Shown: positions 19,589 through 64,000 of the stretch, piece by piece | Position numbering within the stretch: the first letter of the stretch is position 1 | How the letters are laid out: every line of letters begins with the position of its first letter | NCBI GenBank assembly: GCA_946965045.2 | Contig: OX337241.1 | Coordinates: forward strand, 1,054,001-1,118,000 | Length of the DNA stretch: 64,000 bases | Reading direction: 5' to 3' | DNA from: Epithemia pelagica | Lineage: Eukaryota; Protista; Bacillariophyta | The notes under the pieces: generated by a model | What the model saw: only the letters and a program-made list of their open reading frames with translations | Told to the model about the DNA's origin: nothing | The model's database searches: none | Program-made: the position numbers and the translations under genes

Positions 19589-20827
19589 ATGAAAATGAAT
19601 CGCTTCTCTTTCGTTCTGGTTGTTTGCTGGTTGGCATTCGCCGCAGCCCATAACAAGAATGAGGAATCGTCGTCGTTGACCTCTTCCTCGGTACAGCAAG
19701 AAGAAAAAGAAGAAGAAGCATCCTGGGTGAACTTCTTTACAACCACGAGGAGTTCCCTTCCGTCTCTTTTCTCTGTCGACACACAAGCTTCGTTCGAGGA
19801 GAAGGAAACTGTTCCGGCAGTTGTCATTGGACGACAAGAAGATTCGATCGCCGCTCGCCGCCAAGCCTTGCAACTGTCAATCTTTGACAACGATGATCAT
19901 GAACAATGTTACGTAAATCTTTTGGAGGTGGATACTTCTGGAGATTCCAAAGTGTCCCAACAAGAATATTTGGATTTCATTTACGTGCAATCCAATGGCA
20001 TTATTGACAATGTCACGTATCCCTCCTTTGATACCTTGGACTTGAAATTGCGGGCCATTTATCACTTTTCCGAATGGGAGACGAATGGGCAAATTGATTT
20101 GACGACGGACGATCTGGACAAGTTGCGTGGCACTGTCATTTACATTTGCGACGCTGTGACCCTTCGCGTGACGGAATTGACGCCCACCGCGTCGCCCTCG
20201 GTCAGTGCCCTTCCTTCCCTGAGTCCCTCGTTGGCACCGTCCCCGCCGTCTGTCTCGCCCTCCCGGAATCCTTCCACCTCGCCTTCGGCCGTACCGACTC
20301 GACCGCCGACGGACGAAACGCAAGCACGCTCGTCCATTACTCAAGACGAGCCTTCGGAGGAGGACGACGACGGCAACGATTTCCCCCAGGGCTTGTTGCT
20401 GGCCATTTTGGCCATTGCCTGCGCCTTGTGTTTGATTTTGGCGCTCACGGTGCGACGCAAGCAGCAACTGATGAAGGAAGCCGCCGAAGAACAACGACGC
20501 GGCGATACCGGACACTTTCCCGTCTACAAGGCGCACCGAGATGGCGGCCTCGAAGATCCCAAGACGGAAGATTTGGAAGCCTCCCGGTACGAAGCCAGTG
20601 TGTTTGCCACCGCCGCCTCGATGATACAGGAAGAAACCAAAACGGAACCTCCCACTCCCGAGAAACGCGCTGGTCGATCGGCCCTGGCAGTAGAAGAGGT
20701 GGAGGATTGGGTGGAATCCAAAGATGCCTTTGGCAAAACAACCTACTACAACAAACAATCGGGAGAAGTGACCTGGGAACGTCCGCGTATTCTGGCCGAA
20801 TCCATTGTGCGAGGGAACTTTGACTAA
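19589..20827 (+). CDS. Single-pass membrane protein paralog (signal peptide, EF-hand-like domain, Ser/Pro stalk, TM, WW; no PDZ)
   Basis: DTSGDSKVSQQEYLDFI and WETNGQIDLTT match the 10932 paralog; TM GLLLAILAIACALCLILALTV; WW DWVESKDAFGKTTYYNKQSGEVTWERP. Confidence 0.85.
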   Translation: MKMNRFSFVLVVCWLAFAAAHNKNEESSSLTSSSVQQEEKEEEASWVNFFTTTRSSLPSLFSVDTQASFEEKETVPAVVIGRQEDSIAARRQALQLSIFDNDDHEQCYVNLLEVDTSGDSKVSQQEYLDFIYVQSNGIIDNVTYPSFDTLDLKLRAIYHFSEWETNGQIDLTTDDLDKLRGTVIYICDAVTLRVTELTPTASPSVSALPSLSPSLAPSPPSVSPSRNPSTSPSAVPTRPPTDETQARSSITQDEPSEEDDDGNDFPQGLLLAILAIACALCLILALTVRRKQQLMKEAAEEQRRGDTGHFPVYKAHRDGGLEDPKTEDLEASRYEASVFATAASMIQEETKTEPPTPEKRAGRSALAVEEVEDWVESKDAFGKTTYYNKQSGEVTWERPRILAESIVRGNFD

Positions 20828-21828
20828 CGAGTCACTCGTGAACTACCAACTACCAAGTGGTGTCGTTTGGCATACACGACAACAAGCCAACAATGTGAAA
20901 GAAGGACACCTTAGACAATGAGACTAGACATGTGGGGAGAGACAAACCAATATTACTTCGGGACGAGGGCGCTGCCAAACACTGGACGAGAGAGACGAAC
21001 GAGACCGCCAAACCAACTCTTTGTGTGCCTTTACATATCCAAACCTAGCTAATTTTGCATTACTACTCTAGAGAAAAGAGATATGATAGTATTTGTCATG
21101 GAGGCGGCATGCCGCTACCTCTGTTTCTCATGGTCGTTGGTCGTTCTTCCCCTCGTCTTTTCCTTGTACTCCCCGAAGTACACTAGCTATGAAAGGAGCC
21201 TGGTTATAGATCTTACAGAGTGTTCTATAAACAGAATTATCGCCAGATCTTTCCCGTTAAATACGAATCCGAACACCATCCGTTGAAAAATCGGTGGGCA
21301 CGACCATCAATGACCTTTACTCTGGAACAATTTGTACTAGATTTTCGCTGGACACGACACGTTGGTCATTCTGGACATAAGTAAGAACGAATGGTTCAAC
21401 CTGGTAGTATAGCGATTTGAGTACTAGGTAGGAACAGGAACTGTCACTGTTCACAAGGCTTCATGCCGTAAGTTTTTGATAGCCTCCTTCTCCTGTCATG
21501 TCCGATGTCCGATCAGACATACAACACGTCGGACAGACATATCATACGACAGACAGACGCTTGCGGACCTCGTACAGACAGATTCGTGACCCAACTCGGT
21601 ACGGGATCCCTTTTCTGCGACTCCAAGGGCGGTCATTTTGGTACGATCGCGTTTGTCACGACCGCGTCGCTGTGACTCCCCCAAAAACCTTTGCACCGTT
21701 ACGCAGATTGTAGGTAGCACAAACACACAAACGCAAACGGACACTTTTCCCCAAGTCGTTGGTCATTTTTTCTTGGCACGCACCCCACTTTTCTGTTCAA
21801 GTATGCAAATGACCGAGAGTAGGGACGA

Positions 21829-24168
21829 ATGAACGCCTTGATTGTGGATCACCAAAACAAAACAAGCGGAAGCACCAGCATCAACAACGATACCAATACA
21901 GAATCGAATCCAGCCACGAATTCGACCGAAGGAGGAGAACCATTTACCAAAGAAGAAACATCCTCCTTGAGTGACCTTCACTCGACAACGAGTGCAAAAG
22001 ACGCCACCATTCCGCCCTTGTACAAGGCAAAAGACGGAGGTAGCACCCAAAAAGGAGGAGGAGGTGGTGGAACCACGAAAACGTCCTCGTGGGATCCGGC
22101 GGAAAAATATACCAAAATGAGCAGCAAACTATCCTCCTCGTTGCTCAATGCCCTATCTCTCTTTTCGTCGTCGTCGTCCTCTTCGTCTTCGTGGACGGCA
22201 TTGACGACCGGTCCTTTGGGACCTTGGAAGGGTGGCAAGGAATTTTTGACGGCCCAAGTCCAAGTCATTGTCGTCTTGGCGGTGGCCTACATTGGCAACA
22301 ATTGGCCCTATTCCTATCCTCGCAATGCCAATCACAATCCCACCTTGTTTTGGGTCATGAATGCCGCCCTCTTGATTGCCGCTGGTCTCACATGGACGCA
22401 CAATGCCAAGGCATCGGCACGGGGAGTCCAATTGCTCAGTCGGGCGCAAACGGAAGAATGGAAGGGATGGATGCAATGGGCCTTTATCATGGTACGTGTG
22501 TCTGTGTGTGCTCCTAGAACGGGCAATAACAACACGAAAATGATTGTGTTGTGGAGGAGGCTCCCACACTCACTCACATTGTTGTGTCAATGTGTTTGAC
22601 GGTTTTCTTTTTTCTTCTTGACAGTATCACTACTACCGCATGTATGCCGTATACAACGAGATTCGGGTCTTTGTCTCAGCCTATGTTTGGTACGTCAATC
22701 GTCTTGTTGCTGGTGTTGCTCTGTCATGTCGCTGTTGTTCTTTTCCTCGCTGCAACCACGGGTGCGACCTTGAGTGTTGGTTGGGAGTTGGAAGTAGTGA
22801 TTGTGTCAATTTTGTGTCCTCTCACTCTTGTTTTCCTCGTCAACGTAAATATCGTATGTTCATGGTTGTCTGTTGTCGGTTGTTGTTTGGCTATTGTGCT
22901 CTGTGTGTTTCTGGATATTCTATCAACTATATAGGATGACGGGCTTTGGCAACTTTTTGTACTTTGACAAAACCAAGGACTTTTCTTTGGAACGTGCAGT
23001 GAGTATGTGGATTCGAATCAATTACTTTCCCCTCTTGTTGAGTACCTTTGTCAATGTCCCCTTGGAATTGTACTATGTCGTACCCTTGCATACAGTGGGC
23101 TTTTTCATTGCCATGGCCACCTGCTACGTGTCGCATGGGATTTTGCAACAAGGCAAGTTCAAATTGCCCGTCCACAAGGCCAATGGTGTGGCCATTGTCT
23201 TGTGCTTGCTCGTCCATGTCGTCTTTTATGAAACACCCTTGGTCAATTTGCTCAAGTGGTTTTCGGACGAATACCATTTCCGATTCCAATCGGACAAGTA
23301 TTCGGCTTGGGTGGGTATCTTGTCGGGCTTTGTTTGGTTCAAATTCAAGGAGTTTATGCAATGGTGTCATGGAACGGCCGAGACAAGTACCCCTTCAACG
23401 GCCCCCGCATCGTCCTCGACCGTGCCCAATGGTGGTGGTGCTGGAAGTGGAACGGATCCCTTGTTGACCTCCGTGACTCAAGAGAATGCTGCCGTCGCCA
23501 CGGCTCAAGTGATTGCCGGTCCCTTGGCTGTCTTGTTGCCCACATCGGTGGCTCACCAAAAACACATGGCACTCTGGGCTCAACGTGTGGGTGGAGTCTT
23601 GTTGATTGGACTGTGGTATGGTTTGTTTGGACACATTTCGGACAAGTACACGTACAATCCAGTCCATCCCTACGTCTTTTGGATGCCCGTAGCTGGATGG
23701 CTCATGCTGCGCAATTCGTCCAAATACTTGACGGAAGCTCATGCCGGAGCCATGGAATTTTTTGGACGCATCACCTTGGAAACCTATGTCTTGCAATTTC
23801 ATGTGTTCATGTGCAATAAGGTACAACACATTCCCATTGTCGTACCGGGAGCAGGTCCCGACGGAGCGGGGCCCATCAAATTCCTCAATATGCTAGTGTG
23901 CGGTGCCCTCTTTGTGGCATTGGCCTATTGGGCACGACAAATCACAGTGACGACACAAACCACAGGGACGGAATTGGTGGGCTTGTGTTGGAAGGGACAG
24001 TTGTGGTCCTACCTCAAGGAGCCTCATGGTGCCAGTGAATCCGAACATTTGCACAGCAGCGAACATGGAAGCAGTAGCACAAACGACAAGGACACTCCCA
24101 CAAGTGTCGCCGCCGCAGCGTCCACAACAACGACCAGTAGTTCAGGGGAAACGAAGGAATCCGTGTGA
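21829..24168 (+). CDS. CASD1: CAS1-domain multi-TM O-acetyltransferase (CASD1/RWA family); exons 21829-22491, 22625-22689, 22935-24168
   Basis: [39 protein letters not shown] and FFGRITLETYVLQFH are family signatures. The GT..AG introns at 22492-22624 and 22690-22934 join the frames. Confidence 0.9.
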
Positions 24169-24566
24169 GCCAACTTTTTATTTGGAAAATGGATGGTATA
24201 ATAGAAAAAAGTGATACTCTATCCATAACTCTGTTTTTACGGATGAAACTAAACCACATCGTCTGTCAGTTGATTTCGAACACCCACGAGAGGTTCTTAG
24301 GAGTACGTGTATAGACTGTTCCAAGAACACTGTGTCTGAGAAGTCGAGTTTTCGTCGGTTCTCTTCCCACTTTGTAGGACAATGTGGTGCTCCGACCCAT
24401 TGTGGACCACTCGACGACGAAATAGGAATGTCCTCCATGTCGCAAAATGAAAACCTTTCCATTCCATCACTAGTTAAGTGTTTTGAACGCACTTTAGGAT
24501 TGTGTCGGTAAGCCACAAAACATCGAGTCAAGATCACGACGAATCACCAGTCCCCGCACTATACTT

Positions 24567-25858
24567 TCAGAGTTTAGGAATAATTTTGGTTACCTTTCCA
24601 TCTACATGTGTGTGCCGTTCGCAACCATGCCCATTCTTCCATTGACTCGTTGTCATCGTGTGACACTCAACCGAAAAAGGTGGATAATGCAAACTGGGAG
24701 GAAGTTTGGCATTGTACGCCTCCATACTCAGATACGTTTCATTCCAGGTCAAGTTCAAAAAGGCAAACACCTCTGACATGACTTGGTTCGGATCCTGGTA
24801 GAAACGGGTCACGTTGACCACATGAATACCGTCCGGAAACAAGGTTTGTGCAGATTCAAGACTGTGCAGGAATTGTTTACGCTTTCTCTTCGTGGCTCTT
24901 TCATTCACTCCACGTCGGGCCCAGGCCTGTGCGAGTCCCTCATAGTCTCGTTCCATGACAACCACGGGAATGCCAGGAGCTCGTTGCATTACTGTGGGCA
25001 AAGTGTAGACATAACCGGGCGTCTTATCCACCAGATATGATTCATGATCGAGCTGTTGACGTCGAGAAAAGAGCGGAGACGCTTGACGCAACGTATGGTA
25101 CATTTCGGCATGACAGGATGACCCATGGACCATCTGATAACGTTGTGGTACGGTCAGATTCCATGCCCAAAAAGGATCAACCATCCATTCATAAAAAGGA
25201 TGTACGTGTTCAAAGTCTGCCGGACTTGAGCCCAGCAGTATGCCGCCTTCAAATCCACCCATGAGGGTTGGATGAGACATGACGAGTTTAGAAACAATTG
25301 TGGTTCCGGATCGTTCCATACCCGTTAAAATGACTGCAAGACCACTGGCTTCCTTGAATGAGTGCTAACTTTTTCAAAAATGGCTTCAATCTTTGTTGAT
25401 AGAGCAGAGTCCAGGGAAGGCGTGGAAGTGACCTCGATCCCGGAGTTTTGCAGCGCATGAATTGGTTCCGTGCTGTTATCTTGACTTGGGATGAGGGGAG
25501 ACTGGTTTTCCTCTTCAAGAAGCAATGGTACCATTGTGTTTTTACTGGAGATGGGTGATGCAAGTTTCAGAGGCTTTGTGTCATTGCCTTTATTGAATGC
25601 TGTAGTTTTATTTTGCTTTCCTTCGTTTGCGTTCATCTTCGTTGGAACCGGCCGAAGTGGAATGTTTTGTCTGTTCCACCACAAAAAGTGGGCAACGCAA
25701 TAAATTCCAACAATTCTCAGGAAAATAGAAATCCATTTACCTAACGGCCGTGTCTTTGTAGAGGTTTCATGTTTGAACCGAACTGTCTCTTGATTCTTTC
25801 TCGTGTGTGATCCATTTCTCGCGTTTGTTCGATTCTCAATTGCATGAGCGATAAACAT
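24567..25858 (-). pseudogene. Sulfotransferase-like gene (P-loop Sulfotransfer_3 type) with a 1-bp frameshift near 25365
   Basis: The TM/stem ORF (25325-25858) and the catalytic ORF (TGMERSGTT, LVDKTP) are in different frames. Five nt (GTTAG) replace the six nt (AGCAAG/AGTAAG) found in the paralogs at 27294 and 51645. Confidence 0.75.
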
Positions 25859-26738
25859 GACGGAGCGTACCTACCTGGTTGTTTTGCAGAGAAGGAGAAG
25901 AGGGATGTGCAACTCTGGGACACCCACGATGATTGATACCAAGCAGCATTTTCCATGGATTTATGACAACGATCTGGACGCAGCTAGGGGGGAGCAGAAG
26001 GGGAGCAAAAGGGGCATCATCGTCTTGCATGTTGGCATGGTGCTCCTCGAGTGGCCGACGCGAGAAGGTGCGCCGGGCCTGTTTCTTTTAAGTCTATTTA
26101 AGGGATAGTTGACGTTGAGAAGGTGCTACCGGCGGTCGTATTTAAGTGGTAAAATTTCCAACCGATTAATTATTCCTATGTCGATGACTGTTTTAAAAAT
26201 ATGAGAGAGGCCTGCTTGCCGGCGTACGCCGTCCTTCTGTTCACATAAATACACGGCTTGGCATCAATCGTCGTGGGCCCTTCTCGTACCCCCTAGCGGA
26301 AGCTCGAGTCCCGCTCGTGAATGGGTAGAGGTACATTCGCTCCAATCAGGAATCACTCAACCAGGACTCACCCTTCCGCTAGGGGTAGCATTCGAGGGTC
26401 ATTGGTTTCTCGCAATGGAAACAGAGATCCGTAGCGAAGAGAGGCAGGCGCGCGTACGACAATGATTGAATTGTGAATGCTCGCTACTATCAATGGTTAT
26501 ACATCCAATGTAATTTTGGAGTAAAAGTACTCGTGTAGGCTGTGAGTGTGCGAGTCTGTCTGTCTGTGTGTGTTTTCGCGAAGGGCGAGGCACGCGCATG
26601 GCGCGAGCCGTTACACCTCTACGCGCTCGTCCGCCTCCACTAACCTTTGAGCTTGCCACTTTTTTTGCATGAGCGATGTGTTGTGTGTTGTGTGTTCGAG
26701 TTTTGGGTTGAACAGAAAACAGAAACCCATCATCCGTC

Positions 26739-28058
26739 ATGTTTCTCGCTCATGCATTATGGAATCGATCAAAAACGATCAAGAATCACGAGACAGTTTG
26801 TTCGAGAAATGGAACCTCCACCACGACAGCGCCTTCTACAAAAAGGATCCATACAAAGCTACCAGCTTATCGTTACCATTCGGTTCCATCGTTTTATATT
26901 TTCGTAACCCTTGTTGGGATTTGCTGTCTTTCCCATTCCTTGTGGTGGAACCGACAATGTTATCATCCTACGATGACCTACATCGAGGGGCCCATCGCCA
27001 CCACAAACACACCTCAAAGAAAGCACGCAACATCCAACTCCACCACTACGTCCAGAAAAGACAATGATACAAATCATTCCACACTTTCATCACCACATTC
27101 CTTCATCTCGAGTACAGACACAACGTTTGCACTGGTTGTTCAGGAACACAACCATGAACACAACCATTCTGTTCTCGTCACCACTAATGACACCACGAAA
27201 CCAATTCATGCTATGTCGAACTTGAATAACGAAGCCACTGCTCTTGCTTTACCCCTTTCGGATCCGCCAACCCTGGAAACTATATGTGAAAAAAGCAAGC
27301 ACTCATTCAAGGAAGCCAGTGGTTTGGCTGTGATTGTGACTGGCATGGAACGGTCCGGAACTACCATTGTCTCTCGACTCATCATGTCTCATCCAACCCT
27401 CATGGGTGGATTTGAAGGCGGTGTACTGCTGGGCTCAAGCCCGGCAGACTTTGAACACATACATCCTTTTTATGAATGGATGACGGGTCCCCAATACATG
27501 TGGAATTTGACCTCATCCCAACGAAATGAAATGGTCCACGGGTCATCCTGTCATGCTGAAATGTACCATACGTTGCGTCAAAAGTCTCCACTCTTTTCTC
27601 AAGGTCGACAGCTCAGCAGGCACAAAATGTATCTGGTGGATAAGACGCCCCGCTATGTTTACACCTTGCCCACAATAATGGAACGAGCACCTGAAATTCC
27701 CGTAGTGGTCATGGAACGAGATTATGAGGAACTCGTAGAGGCCTGGGCCCGACGCGGAGTGAATGAAACAGCCACGCAAGAAAAGCGTAACCAATTCCGG
27801 TACAGTCTTGAATCTGCACAAACCTTGTATCCGGATCGTATTCATGTGGTCAACGTGTCCCGTTTCTACCAAGATCCGAATCACGTCATGTCAGAGGTGT
27901 TTGCCTTTTTGAACTTGACCTGGAATGAAACGTATCTGAGTATGGAGGCGTATAATGCCAAGCTTCCACGCAGCTTGCATCAACCGCCCTTTTCGAGTCA
28001 TTATTATCCTTCGTCAAAAGAGTATAAACCGGAGAATGAACATGCCCAACCACAATGA
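26739..28058 (+). CDS. Sulfotransferase-like type II membrane protein (Sulfotransfer_3 type)
   Basis: Intact 439-aa ORF; TM FYIFVTLVGICCLSHSLWW; PAPS-binding VIVTGMERSGTT; LVDKTP; VVVMERD. Confidence 0.82.
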   Translation: MFLAHALWNRSKTIKNHETVCSRNGTSTTTAPSTKRIHTKLPAYRYHSVPSFYIFVTLVGICCLSHSLWWNRQCYHPTMTYIEGPIATTNTPQRKHATSNSTTTSRKDNDTNHSTLSSPHSFISSTDTTFALVVQEHNHEHNHSVLVTTNDTTKPIHAMSNLNNEATALALPLSDPPTLETICEKSKHSFKEASGLAVIVTGMERSGTTIVSRLIMSHPTLMGGFEGGVLLGSSPADFEHIHPFYEWMTGPQYMWNLTSSQRNEMVHGSSCHAEMYHTLRQKSPLFSQGRQLSRHKMYLVDKTPRYVYTLPTIMERAPEIPVVVMERDYEELVEAWARRGVNETATQEKRNQFRYSLESAQTLYPDRIHVVNVSRFYQDPNHVMSEVFAFLNLTWNETYLSMEAYNAKLPRSLHQPPFSSHYYPSSKEYKPENEHAQPQ

Positions 28059-28299
28059 ACAAGCTGCAAGGTTTCGTGGGACGAGAATGTACATTAGAAC
28101 CAGGGCTTTAAATCGATTTTCATTGTGAAGTACTCTGGTTCTGGAATTGGAGCTAGTAGGGAATGCTGCTATCTTTGCACAAATTTACAAACTCGTGGCC
28201 CTTTATAAACTAACACCAATAACTTATAATTGATCAGTCGTCGGCAACGATCGATTATTACTTCTGATTGACACAAACATCTTCCAAATTTTGCTTTCC

Positions 28300-28723
28300 A
28301 CTACTATGCTGCTTTCTTCTCCACCCCCTTGTTCTTGACCTCGTAAACTTGCCAGTAGAGTCGGGAGATGGCTTTATCAGCTGGGGTCTCGCCAACACCA
28401 CCCACGTGCCACATCCATGCCGTCTCCATGTTCAGGGCCGAACGGAAAAAGTCCAAGTGGACTACGAGGGACTGGGGAAAGGTCAGGAAGGACAGCAGAC
28501 TCGTGAGCAAGGCAGAGGGGGCCAACGAGTGTTGCAACCAGCCATAGTGGTTTCGATTCAGGATGCTGGTCATGCGGTGGTCATGGTGGTTGTGTCTTGA
28601 AGTAGGCAGTAGGACTTGTTGTGGAGGTTCCATGTCTCGAGCAAACTGTTCGGTGATGCCATATCGTTTTTGATCGATTCCACCACATTCCATGAGCGAG
28701 AAAATGAGTGCAAAAATATGCAT
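28300..28723 (-). pseudogene. Degenerate 5' relic of the same sulfotransferase family
   Basis: The reverse complement of 28620-28685 (TGGAATCGATCAAAAACGAT..GAACCTCCAC) matches 26760-26825. The TM-like LVATLVGPLCLAH parallels FVTLVGICCLSH, but the frame contains stops. Confidence 0.6.
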
Positions 28724-29228
28724 TCGACAAAGCCAACATATCGAGTGGTGATTATACGGCTCTCCTCCTCTCGGGCTCGGGTTGCAGTCTCGTTGAGAGA
28801 TGGGTTCTGTTCTCCAGGCGAGAGATCAAAACAAGAAAGTGTCCTTGAAAAAGTGAGCGCTCGATTTCAAGGTGTGACGGCTCGTGAGTAGCGCGAGCCG
28901 ATGGATCCCGCACGCTAGCCCAGTCGGACAATGTCAACACGCAAACAAACCCAATCTCAGAAATCTTCACGGACACAAGAAAACAAATACAATGACTCCT
29001 CTTTGTAGGATGATGGCAGATTCTCTTTGCACATCATACGGAAACACAAGACTGGATAGCCAGTGTTTACTGCAACGATTGCGATTGCTACTACTACTAC
29101 AACAACGACGACGACAAGGCGTGTCGCACCCAAGACTCGGCACAAATGGTCAACGACATTGCTGCTTTGTCACCTGCAATAGTAACCCATCTTCCAATAT
29201 CCGCAGTGCGAAACATGTGCATGAACGA

Positions 29229-30368
29229 ATGACTCAATCTCCCTCGTTCAGCGCCTCTGTCCTTCGTGCGTGGGAAGCAACTGGATTGAAAGAGCTGCTA
29301 CACCACAATGAGAGAACAATGCCGTCCGATCAAGATTGTGCTGCTACCTCGTTGCTTCAAGCCCATTTGATGCAAGCATGTCATGGCGTGACGGCCGAGT
29401 TGACATTTTACGAAAAGGTTCGAGACGTTTTGGAGGCAAAAGGAAACTCGAATACCAACATGGTGCCAATGGAATCTTCACTCTTGTATGAATATGAGTC
29501 GATCCGAGCGCCTAGCTCAGCCGTGGCCTGTGTGGCCTTGTTTGGAAACTTTTTTCATACATGTCCGCTCGACCAGAGTCCTTTGCTTTCCAGCAAGACA
29601 AGGTATCACAGCGACAAGCGATTTCAAAAGCTCATGGACTTGTCTTCCTTGATTTCTGGAATTGACAACGACTTGCAATCCTACCAGAAACAAGATGATT
29701 CTGATTGGAACAGCATTACCATTCGAACCGTATTTGGAGGCAAGACGCTACGCAAAGCCTTTGATGAGGTCTGTCAACGGCACTTCGACTTGGTACAGGC
29801 CATGAGAGCACTCGGAGGGCAGCTTCAAGAGGATTATCCCACCGACTCCAACCATATTGCCGTCTGGGTGAATATCATACTCCCGAATGTCCATCGTGGC
29901 TTTGTATCTTGGCAATCCCATGTCAAGCGATACAGGAACGAAGGTGATGATGCTACGAATGGCACGTTACTAACAGACAATCTACTGGAACGGCTTTTCC
30001 CTGGAGAGCCGTATCACCAAGTTTCATCAGAGGATGGAACCTTTCCAGGCATGAATGTAGAGTTATATCATTCACTCCATTCGAGTCTCATGGAATGGGC
30101 GGCATCTTGTCGACAAATTGGATCGACAGATGCGACCAAGTATATTGCGGTTGCCAATCCCGCTTTGTTGGCCTTGTTGTTGTTTTCCTATTGCAATCGG
30201 GCAGCAACAGATCTCACACAAGAGGGCCACGACGCGCTAATAGTATTTGTCAAGTTCTTTACATTTCTGTCCATTGTGGATGACATGCTGGAGAATCCCC
30301 AACTGCACGTGCCTACCAAACAAGTCTTTCTTCAATGCATTGAGTCCATGACCATGGACCATCCATAA
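29229..30368 (+). CDS. Microbial-type class I terpene synthase-like protein with permuted motif order
   Basis: YEYESIRAPSS (pyrophosphate-sensor Arg), NDLQSYQKQ (NSE-like, 29667) and WQSHVKRY (WxxxxxRY, 29910) come first, then an N-terminal-type half ending FTFLSIVDDMLE (DDxxE, 30279). The frame is open from 28884; ATG 29229 is a guess. Confidence 0.68.
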   Translation: MTQSPSFSASVLRAWEATGLKELLHHNERTMPSDQDCAATSLLQAHLMQACHGVTAELTFYEKVRDVLEAKGNSNTNMVPMESSLLYEYESIRAPSSAVACVALFGNFFHTCPLDQSPLLSSKTRYHSDKRFQKLMDLSSLISGIDNDLQSYQKQDDSDWNSITIRTVFGGKTLRKAFDEVCQRHFDLVQAMRALGGQLQEDYPTDSNHIAVWVNIILPNVHRGFVSWQSHVKRYRNEGDDATNGTLLTDNLLERLFPGEPYHQVSSEDGTFPGMNVELYHSLHSSLMEWAASCRQIGSTDATKYIAVANPALLALLLFSYCNRAATDLTQEGHDALIVFVKFFTFLSIVDDMLENPQLHVPTKQVFLQCIESMTMDHP

Positions 30369-30562
30369 TCTACCAGAATGCAAAACATCAGGGTAGTCGA
30401 AAGAGAATCATCGGGTCGTGGATCAGTCGACATTGCTTCCCTCCAAAACCTGAGAGGCATATAACAACCGGAGATTTTATGTCAAGTTTTGGTTGGTTCT
30501 GTGCCCTTGCGCTAGAAACGCATTCGGGAGATGGTTGTTTGAATAACCACAACTTTGAGGGA

Positions 30563-31300
30563 ATGCCGTCAATCAATAAGAGTGGATCCTTCTTCTTCAA
30601 GGCAGGCCATACCGCAAGGATAAACGCTCAACCAAGCGAACCGTTTTCTGTCTTTCTGATAGGACCGTCATCAACGGGAAAGACACATCATATTCAAGAG
30701 CTTCAAGAATCTCTCCCAGCCGTCACGAAGGGCGCTGATGTGACCTTCCATTTTGGGATTGCCCGTGATTTTCTACAAAAGCGCGGTATCACAGGAAAGG
30801 ATTTGCTGAATGACAAGAAATTACACATGGAACTACAGGAGTTTTTGGTTCATAAATACAGTGTTCTTCAGCAAGACCCAGTCAAGTGTGGTAGCACCAC
30901 CACCTGCCAGAATGTGCATATGCAAGCAAGCACCAGGAATATTCGTATTTTCGACCGCTCTGCAATCGACGCCATTGTGTATGCCAAACAATATGGTACG
31001 GACCAGGATGCCATGGCGCTGCGAGCTGGGGCAAACTTTCAGTCCTGTGTAAAGCTCTATCGCAATCCGAAAAGCTCGTTGGTGGTTTTGTTTCCTGTCA
31101 TACCTCAACTCGTGAAATCCGATGGTATGCGCATCCATGGAGATGTCGCTGAACAAAACGCCTTGTTTCGGCAATATGAAAGTACCATGAAAGACCTTGG
31201 CATTCCCTTTGTCGTCTTGGGCACAGACTTGAAGCACCGAGGCAAGTGGTTGCTGTCTCGAATTTGTTCTGGAACTGGACACGATACAGGAATCCATTGA
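30563..31300 (+). CDS. AAA_28/NadR-type P-loop NTPase or nucleoside-kinase-like protein
   Basis: Walker A VFLIGPSSTGKT, IFDRSAIDAIVY and DGMR, as in AAA_28 proteins. Confidence 0.75.
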   Translation: MPSINKSGSFFFKAGHTARINAQPSEPFSVFLIGPSSTGKTHHIQELQESLPAVTKGADVTFHFGIARDFLQKRGITGKDLLNDKKLHMELQEFLVHKYSVLQQDPVKCGSTTTCQNVHMQASTRNIRIFDRSAIDAIVYAKQYGTDQDAMALRAGANFQSCVKLYRNPKSSLVVLFPVIPQLVKSDGMRIHGDVAEQNALFRQYESTMKDLGIPFVVLGTDLKHRGKWLLSRICSGTGHDTGIH

Positions 31301-31578
31301 GTATTCAACCAATGCTCGTTTCGGAAATTCTCATGACACAGGAAACCGTTGAGTATTCAATATTCAACCAATGCTTGTTTCGGAATTTCTCTATGTAGGT
31401 GGTATCTCCTGTCAACTGTCAAGGATAGCGATGGAGGCAAGACATGGACATCTATGGATACAACGATAAAAGGACTAAATGCACTGGACAATTCGAATAC
31501 TACCTAGTTTAACGATTTTGTGTTCATCTGTTCGTGCACTTTTGTGGACTGGTGATGGATTGAGAAAGAGACAAGCGT

Positions 31579-34500
31579 TTAGTGCGAACCTAAATCTGAC
31601 TTGACTGTTTTCAAAATACTGTCATCTTGTGATAGCCACTCCATCCAGAGCGAATCTCTCTGTAGCGTATCCTTGCGTCCTATGACAACTAGACCACGCT
31701 TTGCCCGTGTCCACATAACGTTCAATCGTCGGTGGTCTTTGAGGAAACCCAAGTTACTGCGGCAACGAACGGCCGAAAACAGAATGATCGTACGTTCTTG
31801 GCCTTGAAAGCCATCAACAGATCGGACATCAATCTGTGTATTCTTCAAACGATTTTGAATACATTGTACTTGACCAGAATACCCAGTGATGACTCCAATA
31901 TCTTTCGGTTCGAGGTTCTTAGAATCGAGAAGACGTGATACAATATTGACCACTTCCTCCGCTTCTACATGATTGCTCCATGTTGTTCCTATACGCTTTT
32001 CTTCTCCGTCCACGTCAACAAACGCAAGGTAATGAGTTCCGCACCATGGAGCCTCTTTGATTAGAGCAACACTCTCTAGGCTGTGGTCAGTTCGAACCTT
32101 GTCATCGTAGAACTTCAAGAAGGAGAACTTCATCAAAGAAGGATGCATACGATATTGAGTATTAAGCATCACGCAAGGAATGTTGCTGTCGTTTTTAAGA
32201 CGTTCGAACAAACTTTCTTGAAACCCAAACTCTTTGGAAGATTCATGCACTGTTGCCTGTAGCTGTTTGTCATCACCGATCAAGACAAAACGTGTCCTTG
32301 CCTTACATGTAGCAACTCGGGTATTGCAGCTCGTCAGCTGGCCTGCTTCATCGACTATCACAGTATTGAATTCGTTATCCTGGCGTAGCAAACCAACTCC
32401 CGACCCAGTCGCAGTTGAAAATACAACCCGAGCAGTGGTAATAATCTTCTTCATTTCTTTCTGCTTGCATTTTTCGTCATTTTCTTTCAGCGATTCGTGG
32501 TACTCAGGAAGAAAGCGTTGCAAAGATGGCTCCACTTGGCCCGATTCCCCGACACGCACGATCAATGACTCGACGTCCTCGCGATTCAATTTGTGCAATT
32601 CGGAAATGAGCTTAGACAGAATATTGTCCACAGCCTGGTGAGTCGTTGCTGACACAAGAATTCTTTCTTCTCTCGCAAGCAACGCAAGTATGAGACCAAC
32701 CACCGTAGAACTTTTTCCGACAGCAGGCGGTCCCCAAATGAGGCTTACTCGATGTTCGATCGCAGATTTGATAGCTTTCGTTTGGGACCCATTCAACTGG
32801 GTCCATTTCATTCCACTCCGTGTCTCATCATCATCATCAATGTCTTCTAGTGTTCCTGGTTCGACCTGCGGACGACTTGATGCTTCGAACATGACTCGGT
32901 GAGTCGTGGCGTTTCCCACCCTCCATACTTTCCAGTCCACACACTCAACCTCAAAAGGCATCAGACTCAACACCTCAATCTCTAGATGTCCTGCATCGGA
33001 AAATTGCTTGACAACGGCATGGAACGATTGGGAAGTGTAGTCTTTGTGGTTGTTCGCGGGACACATTGCACGAAAAACAAAAACATCTCCGGCACGGATT
33101 TTCTTCCAGACGACACTGTGGGAAACGTTGGGGTCAAGTGTGAGGCCAAAATTCTGTCCTTTGCGTCTCTTGACACTTGCGTAAATCATTATAGGATCTA
33201 CAGATCTCTTGCCATCCAGATCTAGGCTCTTGTAGTTCTCTTCCAGCGTACATTGCAAGTCAACATAAAGTCCCAACACCGATTTGTGTTCATCTTTGTC
33301 GAAGGAAGCAAGAACAACCTCACGAATTTCATGCACCCATTGCGAAACACATGAGGTTAGAGCTAGAAATTCAAGTGTCTCAACCCATTCGTCCGCAGAT
33401 GCTTCGATGCATTTCTTTACCAATTGAATGGGAAGTTTGGATAAGTCGGTATGGTTGTGAATAGATCTCAACAAGCATTTCTTGGATTCGGGAGTATTGG
33501 GTAAGCATTCACTTATTTGGAGTGCAGATGATAACTCGGGTAGTGCATCAATGTCGATGACAAGTCCTTGCATCTCGAGGAGCAATATCAACGAAACATC
33601 GACAGCTACACTGTGCATATGAAACTCTCTGCAGACTTGAATGAACTTGTGAAGTTGTCCGTGCTCAAGATGTGGCAATTCAGTTTCCTCGTGGGCCGTT
33701 GCAAGCCTATAGAGACAAAGCACATCTTCATATTCATCAGTTTGGAGAAAATCAGCTTCCAGTTTTACATCGTAAGACCTTGGTGACCCTCCAGCTTCCT
33801 CCACTTCCGTTGTGACCACATCTTTGGTTCCAACATTGTAGTGCCTCACTTCGGGATCCTTGTCGCAGACGACATACATCTCAACACGCTGAAGTCTCCT
33901 TTTCGTGACTAGATCAAATTGTGCCTTTGCATTGTTTCCAAGTCGGCCCAAGTCAATACTAATTCTACCAAACACTTTAGCGTTGACATCGTCCATCTCA
34001 TAGGGGCATGTCGACATCCAAACAAAAGTATTTCGTGGGTCTCCTGGACCTTTCATGGAGATCTGGAAAAGTTGGCCAGTTAATGCCAATTGATACTGTC
34101 CACCATGAAGACGACTAATGCTCCTGAACGAACCATAAGGATTCGTGGAGAACACGTGGACGTCTTTATGCAGTATGTTTCTCCCCTCATTGAACTGTTG
34201 CTCCAATTGTAGGCAGAGTGTCAGACGGTCGTCGACTTCGATAACGAGTAGTTTCCTTGTAAACTGAACCAATGATGAGATAACTGAATTACCAAATGGA
34301 GCTCGATAGTCACTCTCCGAACTGTAAACGCGCTTCCAGTTGAAGGTCTCAGCAAAACGGAAAGCATCGATGTCGTGTTTCTTGAGAATATTCGACTGTA
34401 AGATCTCATTTTTAAGCAGACAGTTCAGTTGGGGACACTCTTTCAGAGCCCACACTCTTTGTGCCTCTGTAAATCCGTGTAGATCAATATGGGCCAGCAA

Positions 34501-34641
34501 TACGCGGTCAATTTCTTCCAAGTTGTCTGAACGAGCTGTTCTCTGAATCAAACGCAGCATTTCGAATTGTGATATATTCTGGAAGCGGCTACTCGACGAC
34601 AGAAGCCAATGCAGAAGCTGTTGAAAATCGGCCTGGTCCCC
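31579..34641 (-). CDS. UPF1/DNA2/NAM7-like superfamily 1 helicase; in-frame continuation of the RdRP after one TAG
   Basis: GPPAVGKS, VIVDEAGQ, LIGDDKQL, SLFERL, LNTQYRMHP, SVDGFQGQE and RRLNVMWTRAK. The frame is open from 34641, 27 codons before the ATG at 34560. Confidence 0.9.
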   Translation of the reverse strand, partial: GDQADFQQLLHWLLSSSSRFQNISQFEMLRLIQRTARSDNLEEIDRVLLAHIDLHGFTEAQRVWALKECPQLNCLLKNEILQSNILKKHDIDAFRFAETFNWKRVYSSESDYRAPFGNSVISSLVQFTRKLLVIEVDDRLTLCLQLEQQFNEGRNILHKDVHVFSTNPYGSFRSISRLHGGQYQLALTGQLFQISMKGPGDPRNTFVWMSTCPYEMDDVNAKVFGRISIDLGRLGNNAKAQFDLVTKRRLQRVEMYVVCDKDPEVRHYNVGTKDVVTTEVEEAGGSPRSYDVKLEADFLQTDEYEDVLCLYRLATAHEETELPHLEHGQLHKFIQVCREFHMHSVAVDVSLILLLEMQGLVIDIDALPELSSALQISECLPNTPESKKCLLRSIHNHTDLSKLPIQLVKKCIEASADEWVETLEFLALTSCVSQWVHEIREVVLASFDKDEHKSVLGLYVDLQCTLEENYKSLDLDGKRSVDPIMIYASVKRRKGQNFGLTLDPNVSHSVVWKKIRAGDVFVFRAMCPANNHKDYTSQSFHAVVKQFSDAGHLEIEVLSLMPFEVECVDWKVWRVGNATTHRVMFEASSRPQVEPGTLEDIDDDDETRSGMKWTQLNGSQTKAIKSAIEHRVSLIWGPPAVGKSSTVVGLILALLAREERILVSATTHQAVDNILSKLISELHKLNREDVESLIVRVGESGQVEPSLQRFLPEYHESLKENDEKCKQKEMKKIITTARVVFSTATGSGVGLLRQDNEFNTVIVDEAGQLTSCNTRVATCKARTRFVLIGDDKQLQATVHESSKEFGFQESLFERLKNDSNIPCVMLNTQYRMHPSLMKFSFLKFYDDKVRTDHSLESVALIKEAPWCGTHYLAFVDVDGEEKRIGTTWSNHVEAEEVVNIVSRLLDSKNLEPKDIGVITGYSGQVQCIQNRLKNTQIDVRSVDGFQGQERTIILFSAVRCRSNLGFLKDHRRLNVMWTRAKRGLVVIGRKDTLQRDSLWMEWLSQDDSILKTVKSDLGSH

Positions 34642-36513
34642 CTAACGCTCAGAGTCCACACAATCATTTTCTGCTCGGAGAAAATCAGTTATCAGGTCGT
34701 TTGCAAGATTATCCGCATGACTGATAAGAACTTCAATGATTGATGGCTTGCTATCATGAGTTTCCTCTGGAAGTTTTTTAAGATCTGAATCAATCTCAAT
34801 CGGCTGTCCGTCCACACAGCGACTGAAAAGCGCATTAAGTTTGAGTGCTTCACGACAAGTCGCACCTTTTGCTTTTACCCAATCCAGGTACAAGTTCTTG
34901 ACTTGGCCAAGGGAAGCATTGTTGAACTTAGCAAAGTAGCGCACCATATCAGAACGTTCAATCGTGTGCTCGTTTTGGGGGATTTTAGCCGGTGGATATT
35001 TGCATGGCTTGAACTCCGTTGTAGGAATAAGATCGCGATCGAAGATGACCATAAATTCATCACCGTCTAGATCTCCACCTGACATCTCGTCAGCATGAGA
35101 CCGTTGCAGACCATCATTCGTCGAGAACACAACACAGTCTACTAGATGATGGAAATCTGGAACATCGACCAGTTTCAGCTTGCGCATATCCCCCGGATGT
35201 AGACAGGGGTTACGAGAAACTAGCACATACCCCTCGGTGAGAGTTAGTGGTAACCCTTCAACAGTGACACGGACGAAGATTTCATCGGTCCCAAGCTTTC
35301 TTTCAGGTTCTGCCACCCCCAAAAGGAGGCGTGATTCCGGAAGAAGAATTCGGACCTTCCGGTTATTTCTCTTGTCAAACGTTTTCTTCAGCTCTCTTTT
35401 GACGGCTCCTCGTACCTCGCATCGGGTTGCCCGGAGTCCTTTGTCCACAAGTTTATGCATAGCTGGAAACGCTTCTTGGTACGCAAGTAACTGAAACGCA
35501 GCTTCAGGGTCCGTAAAGGCCGAGCGAAGAAACTCAAAATGGTTCTCCTGTTTGGTCAAGAGCGTTTCCTGAGATATTCCCATCTCGGAAAGAAGATTGA
35601 CATACTCAGCATTCAGTGCACCAAACGAGTACGGCCTCGAAGCTTTGATAACGCCAAAAGATGTACTTGAGGATCCTTTGAATTTGCGCATGGAGGGGCG
35701 ACATTGGACCAAAACGCCTTGTGGTATGTCCTTGTGAAGTGCCAACACACCTTTGTAGCCTTGGTACCGAAATTGAATCACACTTGGGTGGTATCTTTCG
35801 CCTCGAAACACCACAGGGCTCCAAGACTCATTTTTCGGAATACGCTTCACAAGCTCTTTGGACATGAGACCACAGCCATCCGTCAGTAACTCTCCCGAGG
35901 ACGTTAGAATATCATCGATTTCTTGAACTCGATCAGCATTGACAGTGATATTGGTCTTTGTTTCAGAAAACAGGAGGGCAATCCGCTTTGTCATTTTCGC
36001 GCATGTTTTCATATCGAAATCGCCCATCGCATTGATCAAGGACGTGATCTCATCGGGGGATCGATTGAGGAGGTAAGCTTTGCCATCCTTTAAACCCGAA
36101 TTACTGCATCCATAAAAGTGGAAGTGATCAGACCCTGAGAAAAGCTGTACACCCCACTTCAGCACCCTTTCCTTGAACTGGGATTTTGCTTTGGGTCCCA
36201 TGTTCTCTCCGTCCCCAAAGCTAAGTTTGATAACTTCATGTGGTTTCAAGCCTTGAAAAGCACGGCATGAGGGCAATTCGTCGAAAAACTCAACTTTGGG
36301 AGGATCATTTGGCGCCGTTAAACTGAACGTCACGAAACGATTCTTTTGCCGTATGATGCTCAAGTCTTGTCGGCTCAACCCCTCAATCATGAATGGTGGT
36401 GGTGGTGGCTTGCGCTTTCCTTGTTTTGGGCGCCAGGAGTTGTTTCTATGAGACGATTGGTCTCTTGGATTTCGTGCCCGTGGCTTTGCGGATCGAGAGG
36501 TTGTTCGTACCAT
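34642..36513 (-). CDS. Eukaryotic cellular RNA-dependent RNA polymerase (RDR type)
   Basis: Catalytic SGGDLDGDEF; also TDGCGLMS, QFRYQGYKG, RPSMRKF, SRNPCLHPGD and DCVVFS. The N-terminus is short and there are no introns. Confidence 0.93.
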   Translation of the reverse strand: MVRTTSRSAKPRARNPRDQSSHRNNSWRPKQGKRKPPPPPFMIEGLSRQDLSIIRQKNRFVTFSLTAPNDPPKVEFFDELPSCRAFQGLKPHEVIKLSFGDGENMGPKAKSQFKERVLKWGVQLFSGSDHFHFYGCSNSGLKDGKAYLLNRSPDEITSLINAMGDFDMKTCAKMTKRIALLFSETKTNITVNADRVQEIDDILTSSGELLTDGCGLMSKELVKRIPKNESWSPVVFRGERYHPSVIQFRYQGYKGVLALHKDIPQGVLVQCRPSMRKFKGSSSTSFGVIKASRPYSFGALNAEYVNLLSEMGISQETLLTKQENHFEFLRSAFTDPEAAFQLLAYQEAFPAMHKLVDKGLRATRCEVRGAVKRELKKTFDKRNNRKVRILLPESRLLLGVAEPERKLGTDEIFVRVTVEGLPLTLTEGYVLVSRNPCLHPGDMRKLKLVDVPDFHHLVDCVVFSTNDGLQRSHADEMSGGDLDGDEFMVIFDRDLIPTTEFKPCKYPPAKIPQNEHTIERSDMVRYFAKFNNASLGQVKNLYLDWVKAKGATCREALKLNALFSRCVDGQPIEIDSDLKKLPEETHDSKPSIIEVLISHADNLANDLITDFLRAENDCVDSER

Positions 36514-36841
36514 GCTAGCAAGGGTTAATCGAGATGTTTCGTCAATGATGGTCTTGATATGGTTTGAGAAAACTGTGCCGTTGTTGGATCACCCGTCTCA
36601 TAGAAGGGAGCCCGGTTTACGTACTTGAGTTTGTGTCCAACCAAAGAACGGCATAAAATGTGGCGGATGTGTAGCGTGTCAAGATTGAAAGTTCACCGAA
36701 AAACGCGAAAAATACCACCAACCAGATGGCGAATTAAAATCATATTGAATCGATCTGCGCTCGTAGAGCTGTCACGGTTTCGATTGGATGTGACAGGAAA
36801 GATTTTTCATCCATAAGGATGAAAAGTAGAAAGCCAATACC

Positions 36842-38265
36842 ATGGTCCTGACAATCCTTTCGGCGACATGGACCAGCGCTCGAAGTGCTGTGGCATTGTC
36901 ACACGTTACAACAATCTTGGAATCTGGAATGTGCGTGTCGTTGTTCCTGCTGTGGCTGCCCTGGGCGCACCAGATCGCCTGGTTCTACTACCGCATGGTA
37001 GTGGATTCCTATCTCTTTTCCTTTCGAACCGTGTCCGAGGTTGCGGATCGAGCCTGTCAGGAAGAAACAAGCAATCAGCCCGTCATTCGATTCCCCTATG
37101 GACAACGAACCATTGTGTTTTCAAACAAGGACGACGTCGCCTACATTCTTTCCAATCCCAAGGTGAACAAAAACTACCGAACCCGATTTGCCACAAACTT
37201 TGGACTCAACATGTTGGGAATGTACAAATCTGGCTTGATCTGGAACAATGATTTGGGATCATGGCAAAGCGTCCGCCGGTGCTTTGATCATACCTTGAGT
37301 ACCAGCACTCTCAACAGGCTCCAGAGCTTTGTCCAAGATCAATTTCCAAAGATACTCGAGAAAATGCCTCGCGACGAGAATGGAGGGACCATTGACATGT
37401 TGGATGCGCTTCGATGGATGACCCTCAACATCACTCTCGATATGATGCTCGGCTTGCCTGTTGTGGATGAGTGGAACAAGGCTCAAGGAATTCTTGAAGC
37501 TATCGTTGCCTTTTTCAAAGCCTGGGAGTTCTTTTTGGTTCGTCCATATATTGTGTCCGTGCTCCGACCCGGCTACCAAAAGCATGCCATGGCAAGGTAG
37601 GTTCCTTATAGACCACGATCATGAGGTCAGCAGACAAACTGACTCACAACTATTTGTTGATTGACCTGTCGTCGGGTTTTCATTCTTGTACAGTCGCCGA
37701 TTGCATGAGATTAGTGAAGGCTTGTTGTCGGATTACGATAGACAACGCGAGCAACATCCCGAGAAAAAGTCGCCCTTGTTGGACAAGGCCATGGAAAATA
37801 CAGAACTTGCTCGAAGCGATCTCGTGCAATTGGTACTGGAATCCTTGTTGGCTGGAGTGGACACTTCCTCGGTATCGCTGTTTTACACGTTGAGTTTTTT
37901 GTCGCAAACCGAGAATCGAGATATGCTTCGACAGGCGGTGGAGGAGGTTGACACCTTTGTACACCATGGCGACAAGATTAAAGCCATGTCCTTGCCGTTC
38001 ATCCGAGCATGTATCAAGGAAGCCATGAGACTCAAACCTGTCGGACCCATTATAATGCGCAAGGCAGCCCAACAGGACAACGTAGGCACCACTATCATCC
38101 AGCCCGGCGATTCGATTATTCTGAACCTGGCCCAAATGAATCTCAAGGGTGTGGAAACCTCCTACTCGCCAAGTCGGTTCTTGAATGAGGAGGGCCAGCA
38201 TACACCCGACGCCCAGTTACCCTTTGGATACTTTCCATTTGGCGATGGTCCCAAAGGATGTGTCG
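36842..38265 (+). pseudogene. Cytochrome P450 resembling the CYP19 (aromatase) clan, truncated just after the heme Cys; intron 37597-37693
   Basis: I-helix LESLLAGVDTSSVSLF, ExxR (EAMR), and heme motif FGDGPKGC (Cys codon 38259-38261) followed by unrelated sequence. The GT..AG intron restores the frame. Confidence 0.85.
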
Positions 38266-61037: not shown

Positions 61038-61495
61038 AGAGCAGAGTCCAGGGAAGGCGTGGAAGTGACCTTGTTCCCGGAGTTTTGCAGCGCATGAATT
61101 GGTTCCGTGCTGTTATCATGACTTGGGATGAGGGGAGACTGGTTTTCCTCTTCAAGAAGCAATGGTACCATTGTGTTTTTACTGGAGATGGGTGATGCAA
61201 GTTTCAAAGGCTTTGTGTCATTGCCTTTATTGAATGCTGTAGTTTTATTTTGCTTTCCTTCGTTTGCGTTCATCTTGGTTGGAACCGGCCGAAGTGGAAT
61301 GTTTTGTCTGTTCCACCACAAAAAGTGGGCAACGCAATAAATTCCAAGAATTCTCAGGAAAATAGAAATCCATTTACCTAACGGCCGTGTCTTTGTAGAG
61401 GTTTCATGTTTGAACCGAACTGTCTCTTCATTTTTCTCGTGTGTGATCCATTTCTCGCGTTTGTTCGATTCTCAATTGCATGAGCGATAAACATG
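61038..61495 (-). pseudogene. 5' half of the second minus-strand sulfotransferase copy
   Basis: Homologous to 25401-25858; truncated by the 9.4 kb insertion, with a small indel near 61430. Confidence 0.75.
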
Positions 61496-62307
61496 ACGGA
61501 GCGTACCTACCTGGTTGTTTTGCGAAGAAGGAGAAGAGGGATGTACAACTCTGGGACACCCACGATGATTGATGCCAAGCAGCATTTTCCATGGATTTAT
61601 GACAACGATCTGGACGCCCGACGCGAGAAGGTGCGCCGGGCCCGTTTCTTTAAAGTCTATTTAAGGGATAGTTGACGTTGAGAAGGTGCTGCCGGCGGTC
61701 GTATTTAAGTGGTAAAATTTTCAGCCGATTAATTATTCCTATGTCGATGACTGTTTTAAGAATATGAGAGAGGCCTGCTTGCCGGCGTACGCCGTCCTTC
61801 TGTTCACATAAATACACGGCTTGGCATCAATCGTCGTGGTCGTGGGCCCTTCTCGTACCCCCTAGCGGAATCTCGAGTCCCGCTCGTGAATGGGTAGAGG
61901 TACATTCGCTCCAATCAGGAATCACTCAACCAGGACTCACCCTTCCGCTAGGGGTGGCATTCGAGGGTCATTGGTTTCTCGCAATGGAAACAGAGATCCG
62001 TAGCGAAGAGAGGCAGGCGCGCGTACGACAATGATTCAATTGTGAATGCCCGCTACTATCTATGGTTATACATCCAATGTAATTTTGGAGTAAAAGTACT
62101 CGTGTAGGCTGTGAGTGTGCGAGTCTGTCTGTCTGTGTGTGTTTTCGCGAAGGGCGAGGCACGCGCATGGCGCGAGCCGTCACACCTCTACGCGCTCGTC
62201 GGCCTCCACTAACCTTTGAGCTTGCCACTTTTTTTGCATGAGCGATGTGTTGTGTGTTGTGTGTTCGAGTTTTGGGTTGAACAGAAAACAGAAACCCATC
62301 ATCCGTC

Positions 62308-63627: not shown

Positions 63628-64000
63628 ACAAGCTGCAAGGTTTCGTGGGACGAGAATGTACATTAGAACCAGGGCTTTAAATCGATTTTCATTGTGAAGT
63701 ACTCTGGTTCTGGAATTGGAGCTAGTAGGGAATGCTGCTATCTTTGCACAAATTTACAAACTCGTGGCCCTTTATAAACTAACACCAATAACTTATAATT
63801 GATCAGTCGTCGGCAACGATCGATTATTACTTCTGATTGACACAAACATCTTCCAAATTTTGCTTTCCACTACTATGCTGCTTTCTTCTCCACCCCCTTG
63901 TTCTTGACCTCCTAAACTTGCCAGTGGAGTCGGGAGATGGCTTTATCAGCTGGGATCTCGCCAACACCACCCACGTGCCACATCCATGCCGTCTCCATGT

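Follow-up and report, generated by a model that had tools for sequence, protein, structure and literature searches.

We describe a gene of the diatom Epithemia pelagica in which a cellular RNA-dependent RNA polymerase (RdRP) and a UPF1-like helicase are joined in one reading frame, and for which the copy studied here carries a single amber codon between the two enzymes. The copy lies on the minus strand at positions 31579-36513 of a 64-kb window, that is, the whole stretch of 64,000 nucleotides analysed (contig OX337241.1 of assembly GCA_946965045.2, positions 1,054,001 to 1,118,000). A nearly identical paralog on the same contig is open from start to stop without interruption, and we consider it highly probable that the window copy is a recently disabled duplicate, either a null or a stub, of a real gene with a single open reading frame (ORF). 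The architecture of the gene is already known and is widespread in fungi, so that the diatom gene is a further member of an existing family, but its presence in a diatom, the fold found between the two enzymes and the company that the gene keeps are additions to what has been reported.

The RdRP–helicase gene and its amber codon

A preliminary description of the window, made from the sequence alone, had seen an RdRP and a UPF1-like helicase in one frame of about 1,640 codons split only by a single TAG. Its coordinates and residues hold (Table 1): there are 1,644 codons from the ATG of the RdRP through the TAG, which is codon 624, to the end of the helicase, and the TAG is followed by 27 open codons before the next ATG, with the stop codon of the frame at 31579-31581. 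We estimate the chance of finding two neighbouring ORFs in the same frame with 27 open codons between them at roughly 1 in 10. The two pieces of the window copy were searched separately, and the intact paralog served for all full-length work. The RdRP part scores 353.9 bits against PF05183, for which the curated cut-off is 23.8, which places it among the cellular (eukaryotic) RdRPs; the match spans positions 26-547 of the 582 in the profile and ends at about residue 586, and among solved chains plant RDR2 (E ~1e-36) and QDE-1 come closest. The start methionine of the window copy lines up with Met-1 in all 28 aligned homologs. In the helicase part both RecA halves are matched and Walker A, DExx, motif III, motif V and motif VI are all present, as in UPF1-like helicases of superfamily 1B (SF1B), with NAM7/UPF1 the best of the solved chains (E 3.5e-51), followed by Sen1, SETX, IGHMBP2, DNA2 and ZNFX1.

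A genome-wide scan with the RdRP profile, covering 60.5 Mb in 23 contigs, found a second RdRP locus, which lies on the contig of the window copy within an open frame of 1,668 codons. This paralog (L009:3137-8068, minus strand) is an uninterrupted ORF of 1,643 codons from ATG to stop, lies 35,558 bp from the window copy and is 99.6% identical to it, with 18 substitutions and one codon indel separating the two over 4,935 nt. At codon 624 the paralog has GAG (Glu) and the window copy TAG, and the approximately 35 nt around this codon are otherwise identical. Because the paralog has the same sequence, with GAG at codon 624 and no stop, the two halves of the window copy are one gene, and the fusion of RdRP and helicase in a single gene is real, as the preliminary description had supposed. 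A third version of the gene, found on a 123-kb haplotig and allelic to the paralog by its flanking genes, also has GAG at codon 624, although this allele (L012:3761-8691) carries a lesion of its own, the loss of 1 bp from a T4 run at codon 124. The column of codon 624 holds ordinary sense residues in all 28 aligned relatives. Since GAG is found in both paralog and allele, and sense residues in the 28 relatives, the TAG is a young, derived nonsense change of a single base, G to T. The ortholog in a second diatom assembly is 57–62% identical and has the same neighbour genes; it too forms one continuous coding region, with a frameshift near residue 1066 where one base replaces a codon (L013:11176-11207).

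The window copy belongs to a duplicated block containing genes for a sulfotransferase, a permuted terpene synthase, an AAA_28 protein, the RdRP–helicase and a cytochrome P450 (P450), with a spacer of about 22.8 kb between the two copies of the block. Divergence between the copies is 0.36% in the RdRP–helicase gene (0.45% at synonymous sites) and 0.24–0.36% over the tract holding AAA_28 and RdRP–helicase genes, whereas the flanking terpene-synthase and P450 segments diverge by 1.75–2.9% (Fisher p 4e-15 against the central tract). A central tract of about 6 kb is about 6 times less diverged than its flanks, which suggests that recent gene conversion homogenised the two copies, and because the low-divergence tract is read in this way the stop would be younger than the homogenisation. 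The earlier suggestion of a freshly inactivated gene agrees well with a single derived G to T change in a tract that differs from the paralog by just 0.36%. Changes assigned to the branch of the window copy comprise 9 missense, 1 nonsense and 3 synonymous substitutions, with a ratio of nonsynonymous to synonymous rates (dN/dS) of about 0.96; among them is S1465F, which lies downstream of the stop and affects a site where 27 of the 28 relatives have Ser.

The fusion is not peculiar to the diatom. A full-length word search found at least 35 proteins of 1,468–1,783 aa with RdRP, AAA_11 and AAA_12 together in a single polypeptide, from Ascomycota, Basidiomycota, the chytrid Nowakowskiella and metagenomes, so that homologs are not confined to separate genes. 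Query coverage is 92–96% for three of the members (P0003, P0004 and P0006) and 92% for the Nowakowskiella protein, and the identity of the diatom protein is 28–32% to the named members from Dikarya and 42–43% to both the Nowakowskiella protein and P0003, the word search itself giving 39% for Nowakowskiella. The alignment of the family runs from Met-1 through to the C-terminus, each of the three regions has invariant positions, and all catalytic motifs are present. That RdRP and helicase occur as separate proteins, as the preliminary description had stated of cellular RdRPs, does not hold throughout: FgRdrp5 of Fusarium graminearum (FGSG_09076) had already been described as an RdRP with a C-terminal helicase (1277-1478) and AAA domain (1475-1677) that stands on its own branch (PMC4515635, PMC11237814). 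Deletion of FgRdrp5 lowers ascospore discharge and the accumulation of exonic small interfering RNA (ex-siRNA) (PMC4515635, PMC11237814) and is without effect on sexual silencing induced by tandem repeats (PMC12366691). From the published domain layout, and from members of the same genus (F. poae and F. longipes) in our set, we infer that FgRdrp5 belongs to the family of the diatom gene. FgRdrp5 and its fungal relatives, of about 1,650–1,750 aa and mostly annotated as RdRP-domain-containing or hypothetical proteins, share the N-terminal PF05183 and C-terminal AAA_11 and AAA_12 and are alignable with the diatom protein throughout. The diatom gene differs from this family in its host, in being intronless, in having as its partner a fused P450-AAA_28 gene, as in the chytrid, and in the broken state of the window copy.

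A second and abundant clade of RdRPs, of about 960–1,050 aa (P0185-P0217, with one cluster of 844 member sequences), was also seen. On a contig of this clade (L015, ENA ERZ26692669) AAA_11 and AAA_12 pieces lie about 3 kb downstream on the same strand, and the clade is probably the same fusion with introns.

Table 1. Features of the RdRP–helicase locus and its surroundings, in window coordinates.
Feature	Position	Strand	Remarks
Duplicated block holding the window copy	25401..38265	.	~12.9 kb; twin runs from 61038 to 64000 and 9,814 bases beyond
Second AAA_28 gene, facing the 3' end of the fusion gene (convergent)	30479..31300	+	PF13521, E 1e-14; syntenic in the second diatom species
In-frame continuation (middle domains and helicase)	31579..34641	-	1,020 codons plus stop; first ATG at 34558-34560
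UPF1-like superfamily 1 (SF1) helicase core	31666..32799	-	AAA_11 (E 1e-37), AAA_12 (E 2e-51); C-terminal
Helicase motifs	Walker A GPPAVGKS 32710-32733; DEAGQ 32338-32352; motif VI 31702-31731	-	Read from the sequence
Codon 1465, private to the window copy	32119..32121	-	Phe; Ser in paralog, allele and 27/28 relatives
Predicted helicase accessory stalk helices and beta-barrel, residues ~1039-1236	32806..33399	-	Structural alignment
Predicted TLDc-fold domain, residues ~702-883	33865..34410	-	Block pLDDT mostly 72-94, one block 57
Derived amber codon TAG (CTA on the plus strand)	34642..34644	-	GAG in paralog and haplotig allele
RdRP part of the window copy	34645..36513	-	623 codons from ATG; Pfam PF05183, E 2.4e-105
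RdRP catalytic motif DLDGD (DbDGD loop)	35059..35073	-	In window copy and paralog; D483, G484 and D485 invariant in the family alignment
Head-to-head partner gene (P450-AAA_28), cut off	36842..38265	+	N-terminal P450 part only; AAA_28 missing

Consequences of the stop and alternative explanations

If the window copy is a disabled duplicate, then the G to T change would have turned Glu-624 into a stop, the copy would make at most an RdRP-only stub of 623 aa, and the 1,020 codons downstream would no longer be translated from that mRNA. The protein encoded by the intact gene probably acts as a self-contained RdRP/helicase silencing module comparable to Rdp1-Hrr1, EGO-1/ZNFX-1 and RDR6/SDE3, a role proposed because of the analogy with such pairs and because of the drop in ex-siRNA reported for the FgRdrp5 deletion mutant. 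By the same analogy the 5'→3' helicase would clear or feed template RNA, from which the tethered polymerase would make double-stranded or small RNA copies.

Several observations weigh against this account. All the helicase motifs checked are still intact in the window copy and the part downstream of the stop has hardly decayed, and the changes on its branch are too few to separate neutral decay from constraint. Of the four diatom copies sequenced, three carry lesions, each a different one, and one is intact; lesions are oddly common, so that either loss of the gene is frequent or some of the lesions are assembly errors. The link to FgRdrp5 depends on the reported layout and on the members of the same genus. 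To these may be added the probable common origin of the assemblies, which is taken up below.

An alternative is gene fission or subfunctionalisation in progress, in which the duplicate is kept for a useful RdRP-only product, or for a useful helicase-only product made by way of an internal promoter and the ATG at 34558-34560. The RdRP domain ends ahead of the stop, so that a stub would hold a complete catalytic domain, and the downstream ORF opens with an ATG, keeps all the helicase motifs and was predicted by a gene caller as a separate protein of 993 aa. The break, however, is common to no other copy, since the lesions of the haplotig allele and of the second-species gene lie elsewhere and the paralog has none; a word search returned no stand-alone relatives of the middle piece; and the window copy has both S1465F, at a near-invariant helicase position, and a partner gene that is cut off. 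Fission is for these reasons an unlikely explanation.

We regard as very unlikely that the TAG is a sequencing or assembly error, with G as the true base and both copies intact fusions. The difference is one of a single base, and although the contig-level ENA assembly ERZ21939226 holds both copies base for base, with the TAG on ctg1346l, that assembly and the chromosome-level one were probably built from the same reads and do not confirm the TAG independently, a point that counts against our preferred account as well. Against an error stand the agreement of the contig-level and chromosome-level assemblies on this base and the 17 other positions that distinguish the window copy from the paralog, which indicate that the copies were resolved and not collapsed; substitution errors are, moreover, rare in the consensus of long reads.

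Programmed readthrough, which would yield RdRP-only and full-length proteins from the window copy, had been offered in the preliminary description as the alternative to inactivation and has fared poorly. The frame is indeed open across the stop and for 1,020 codons beyond it, and the replicases of tobamoviruses have a similar two-product design. But the stop is missing from the paralog, the allele and all aligned relatives, and with some 35 nt around it otherwise unchanged its context is simply that of the sense codon of the paralog, so that no surroundings suited to readthrough have evolved. A G follows the stop, and a purine at +4 in general favours termination. Full-length protein is already available from the intact paralog, and a Ser conserved in nearly all relatives has been replaced by Phe downstream of the stop, all of which makes readthrough a most improbable explanation. 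That TAG is read as a sense codon under a variant genetic code is effectively refuted, given that the homologous codon of the paralog is GAG and that with TAG as a stop long unbroken genes result throughout the window and the genome, such as the 1,643-codon paralog and at least 11 full-length silicon-transporter genes (E ~1e-226 or lower-scoring).

The middle region and likeness to known systems

The approximately 500 aa between the RdRP and the helicase were left unassigned in the preliminary description and are now largely assigned in a structural model, with helical stretches left over. An AlphaFold model of residues 555-1300, made with an anchored family alignment (mean predicted local distance difference test (pLDDT) score 76.6), places from N- to C-terminus a helical region (residues ~630-701), a beta-rich domain, a second helical region (residues ~926-1038) and stalk helices with a beta-barrel leading into RecA1. 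In the model the beta-rich domain has a TLDc fold: it superposes on the TLDc domain of NCOA7-AS (7obp_A) with Z 14.8 and a root-mean-square deviation (rmsd) of 2.7 Å over 151 of 165 residues, and OXR2 (4acj, Z 14.2), mEAK7 and TBC1D24 also match (Foldseek E 2e-4). The Pfam TLD profile (PF07534) has no match in the protein at E<=1, none at E<=0.01 across 29 family members and none at the RdRP–helicase locus in the genome scan, while an hhalign comparison of the family profile with TLD is weak (E 0.026) and in register on a W-x-x-Y-S motif; the TLDc assignment is therefore one of fold, not of membership in the sequence profile. The stalk and barrel are of the Sen1/UPF1 type and lie in front of RecA1, residues 485-746 of the model matching the helicase cores of Sen1, SETX, ZNFX1 and UPF1 with Z 8–10 and a high rmsd of 6–8 Å. 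Within the family alignment the middle region has invariant columns at N702, L755, S852, L855 and E878. Comparison of the middle region with PDB sequences returned chance matches only, and a word search for the middle piece by itself turned up only its own protein and that of the second diatom, with no stand-alone form at the sensitivity of that search.

The likeness to TLDc proteins (OXR1/2, NCOA7, TBC1D24 and mEAK7) covers nearly the whole domain, with Z 12–15 and rmsd 2.7–3.1 Å. These proteins are known to bind the V-ATPase, and a literature search found none reported as fused to an RdRP or a helicase, nor any paper in which TLDc is combined with RdRP and helicase. The literature on the FgRdrp5 family likewise gives RdRP, helicase and AAA domains only, and neither a TLDc-fold domain nor a conserved neighbour.

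The same two activities are found as separate proteins in Schizosaccharomyces pombe Rdp1-Hrr1, Neurospora SAD-1/SAD-3, Caenorhabditis elegans EGO-1/ZNFX-1 and Arabidopsis RDR6/SDE3, pairs thought to cooperate in the production of silencing RNA (PMC11237814 cites such roles for Hrr1 and SAD-3). The diatom helicase part has its closest matches, in structure and in sequence, in ZNFX1, Sen1 and UPF1. The diatom RdRP and helicase differ from these pairs in being covalently joined through a TLDc-containing linker. Helicase and cellular RdRP also occur in one polypeptide in Dictyostelium, peronosporomycete oomycetes, Hydra and Nematostella (PMC4791657), among which is a stramenopile lineage, but in those fusions the helicase is N-terminal and of superfamily 2 (Dicer-like DEAD/helicase-C), while in the diatom protein it is C-terminal and of the SF1B UPF1-like type. 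The Dicer-type and UPF1-type fusions are independent.

The AAA_28 partner and the chytrid–diatom relationship

In every named genome checked, namely Fusarium poae, Fonsecaea, Laetiporus, the chytrid and both diatoms, the fusion gene has an AAA_28 (PF13521) gene just upstream, transcribed divergently from it. The head-to-head spacer is 288 bp in Fusarium poae, 259 bp in Fonsecaea and 322 bp in Laetiporus; that of the window (36514-36841) falls within the range of 259–328 bp, and that of the chytrid is about 0.5–0.6 kb. Conserved bidirectional gene pairs are rare in eukaryotes. A metagenomic contig (L016) had no AAA_28 neighbour and was the sole checked contig without one. On contig L015, from the second RdRP clade, an AAA_28 gene is found about 2.7 kb upstream of the RdRP in the opposite orientation, and a rotifer protein (P0221) has an RdRP fused to AAA_28 itself. 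The AAA_28 domain is similar to the kinase-like domain at the C-terminus of NadR, and a literature search for AAA_28 together with RdRP returned nothing relevant. A regulatory or partner role is probable for both the TLDc domain and the conserved AAA_28 P-loop protein encoded next to the fusion gene.

Beside the window copy the partner gene is truncated: homology to the intact partner gene of the paralog ends together with the duplicated block at 38265, so that both genes of the window cassette are damaged while the paralog keeps its full context. The intact partner consists of a 252-aa ORF (orf252) and a piece of 462 aa, probably split by an intron of about 85 bp, which jointly match one P450-AAA_28 gene of 610 aa in the chytrid at 39–41% identity. 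Besides this P450-AAA_28 neighbour, the diatoms and the chytrid have in common the variant GPPAVGK[ST] of Walker A.

Trees of the RdRP domain and of the full-length protein place the diatom sequences with a Logan protein and the chytrid (support of 100 in the Shimodaira–Hasegawa-like approximate likelihood ratio test, SH-aLRT), this group being sister to all members from Dikarya; the other RdRPs of the diatom fall in the outgroup. Constraining the named fungi to group together costs 349 log-likelihood units (p 7e-36 in the approximately unbiased (AU) test, with 15 taxa and LG+F+G4 in IQ-TREE), a cost to which the exclusion of two probably fungal rows by the same constraint adds slightly. The chytrid gene is not a diatom contaminant, since its contig has 34% GC and the fusion gene on it has introns. 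No homologs were found in other diatoms or in MMETSP at the sensitivity of a word search. These results suggest that a block of two genes passed from a chytrid-like fungus to a diatom lineage before the split of the two sampled species, with one chytrid sampled and the direction of transfer inferred.

Two further observations concern the surroundings of the gene. The copies of the block differ by a 10-bp indel at 30519, close to the 5' end of the AAA_28 gene downstream; its ORF has 273 aa in the window copy and starts later in the paralog version, which has 253–265 aa. The neighbourhood from about 20000 to 38000, together with the flanks on L010 and L011, holds a terpene synthase, P450s, two sulfotransferases, an FGE-sulfatase, a short-chain dehydrogenase and Cas1-type acyltransferases, and by its gene content looks like a biosynthetic cluster.

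For the gene studied here, the amber codon is most likely an ordinary young null mutation in a duplicate and not a recoding signal. The RNA-silencing machinery of diatoms is poorly known, and the gene shows that an RdRP–UPF1-like helicase enzyme of the FgRdrp5 type exists in diatoms too. Three leads that we found in no paper follow from the comparison, namely the TLDc-fold domain predicted between the two enzymes, the head-to-head AAA_28 gene across fungal phyla, and the link between chytrid and diatoms, which includes the neighbour gene. This last looks like a horizontal transfer of two genes between a parasite lineage and its host group. We would give about even chances to a broader account, in which RdRP-TLDc-helicase and head-to-head AAA_28 form an ancient coupled silencing or defence cassette of Ascomycota, Basidiomycota and Chytridiomycota, whose chytrid form, with P450-AAA_28, was transferred to a diatom lineage and there came to be duplicated, converted and repeatedly knocked out in the manner of accessory immune genes. 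For the family as a whole, the conserved pairing with AAA_28 offers a concrete, testable hypothesis for a missing cofactor of the FgRdrp5-type class of RdRPs.

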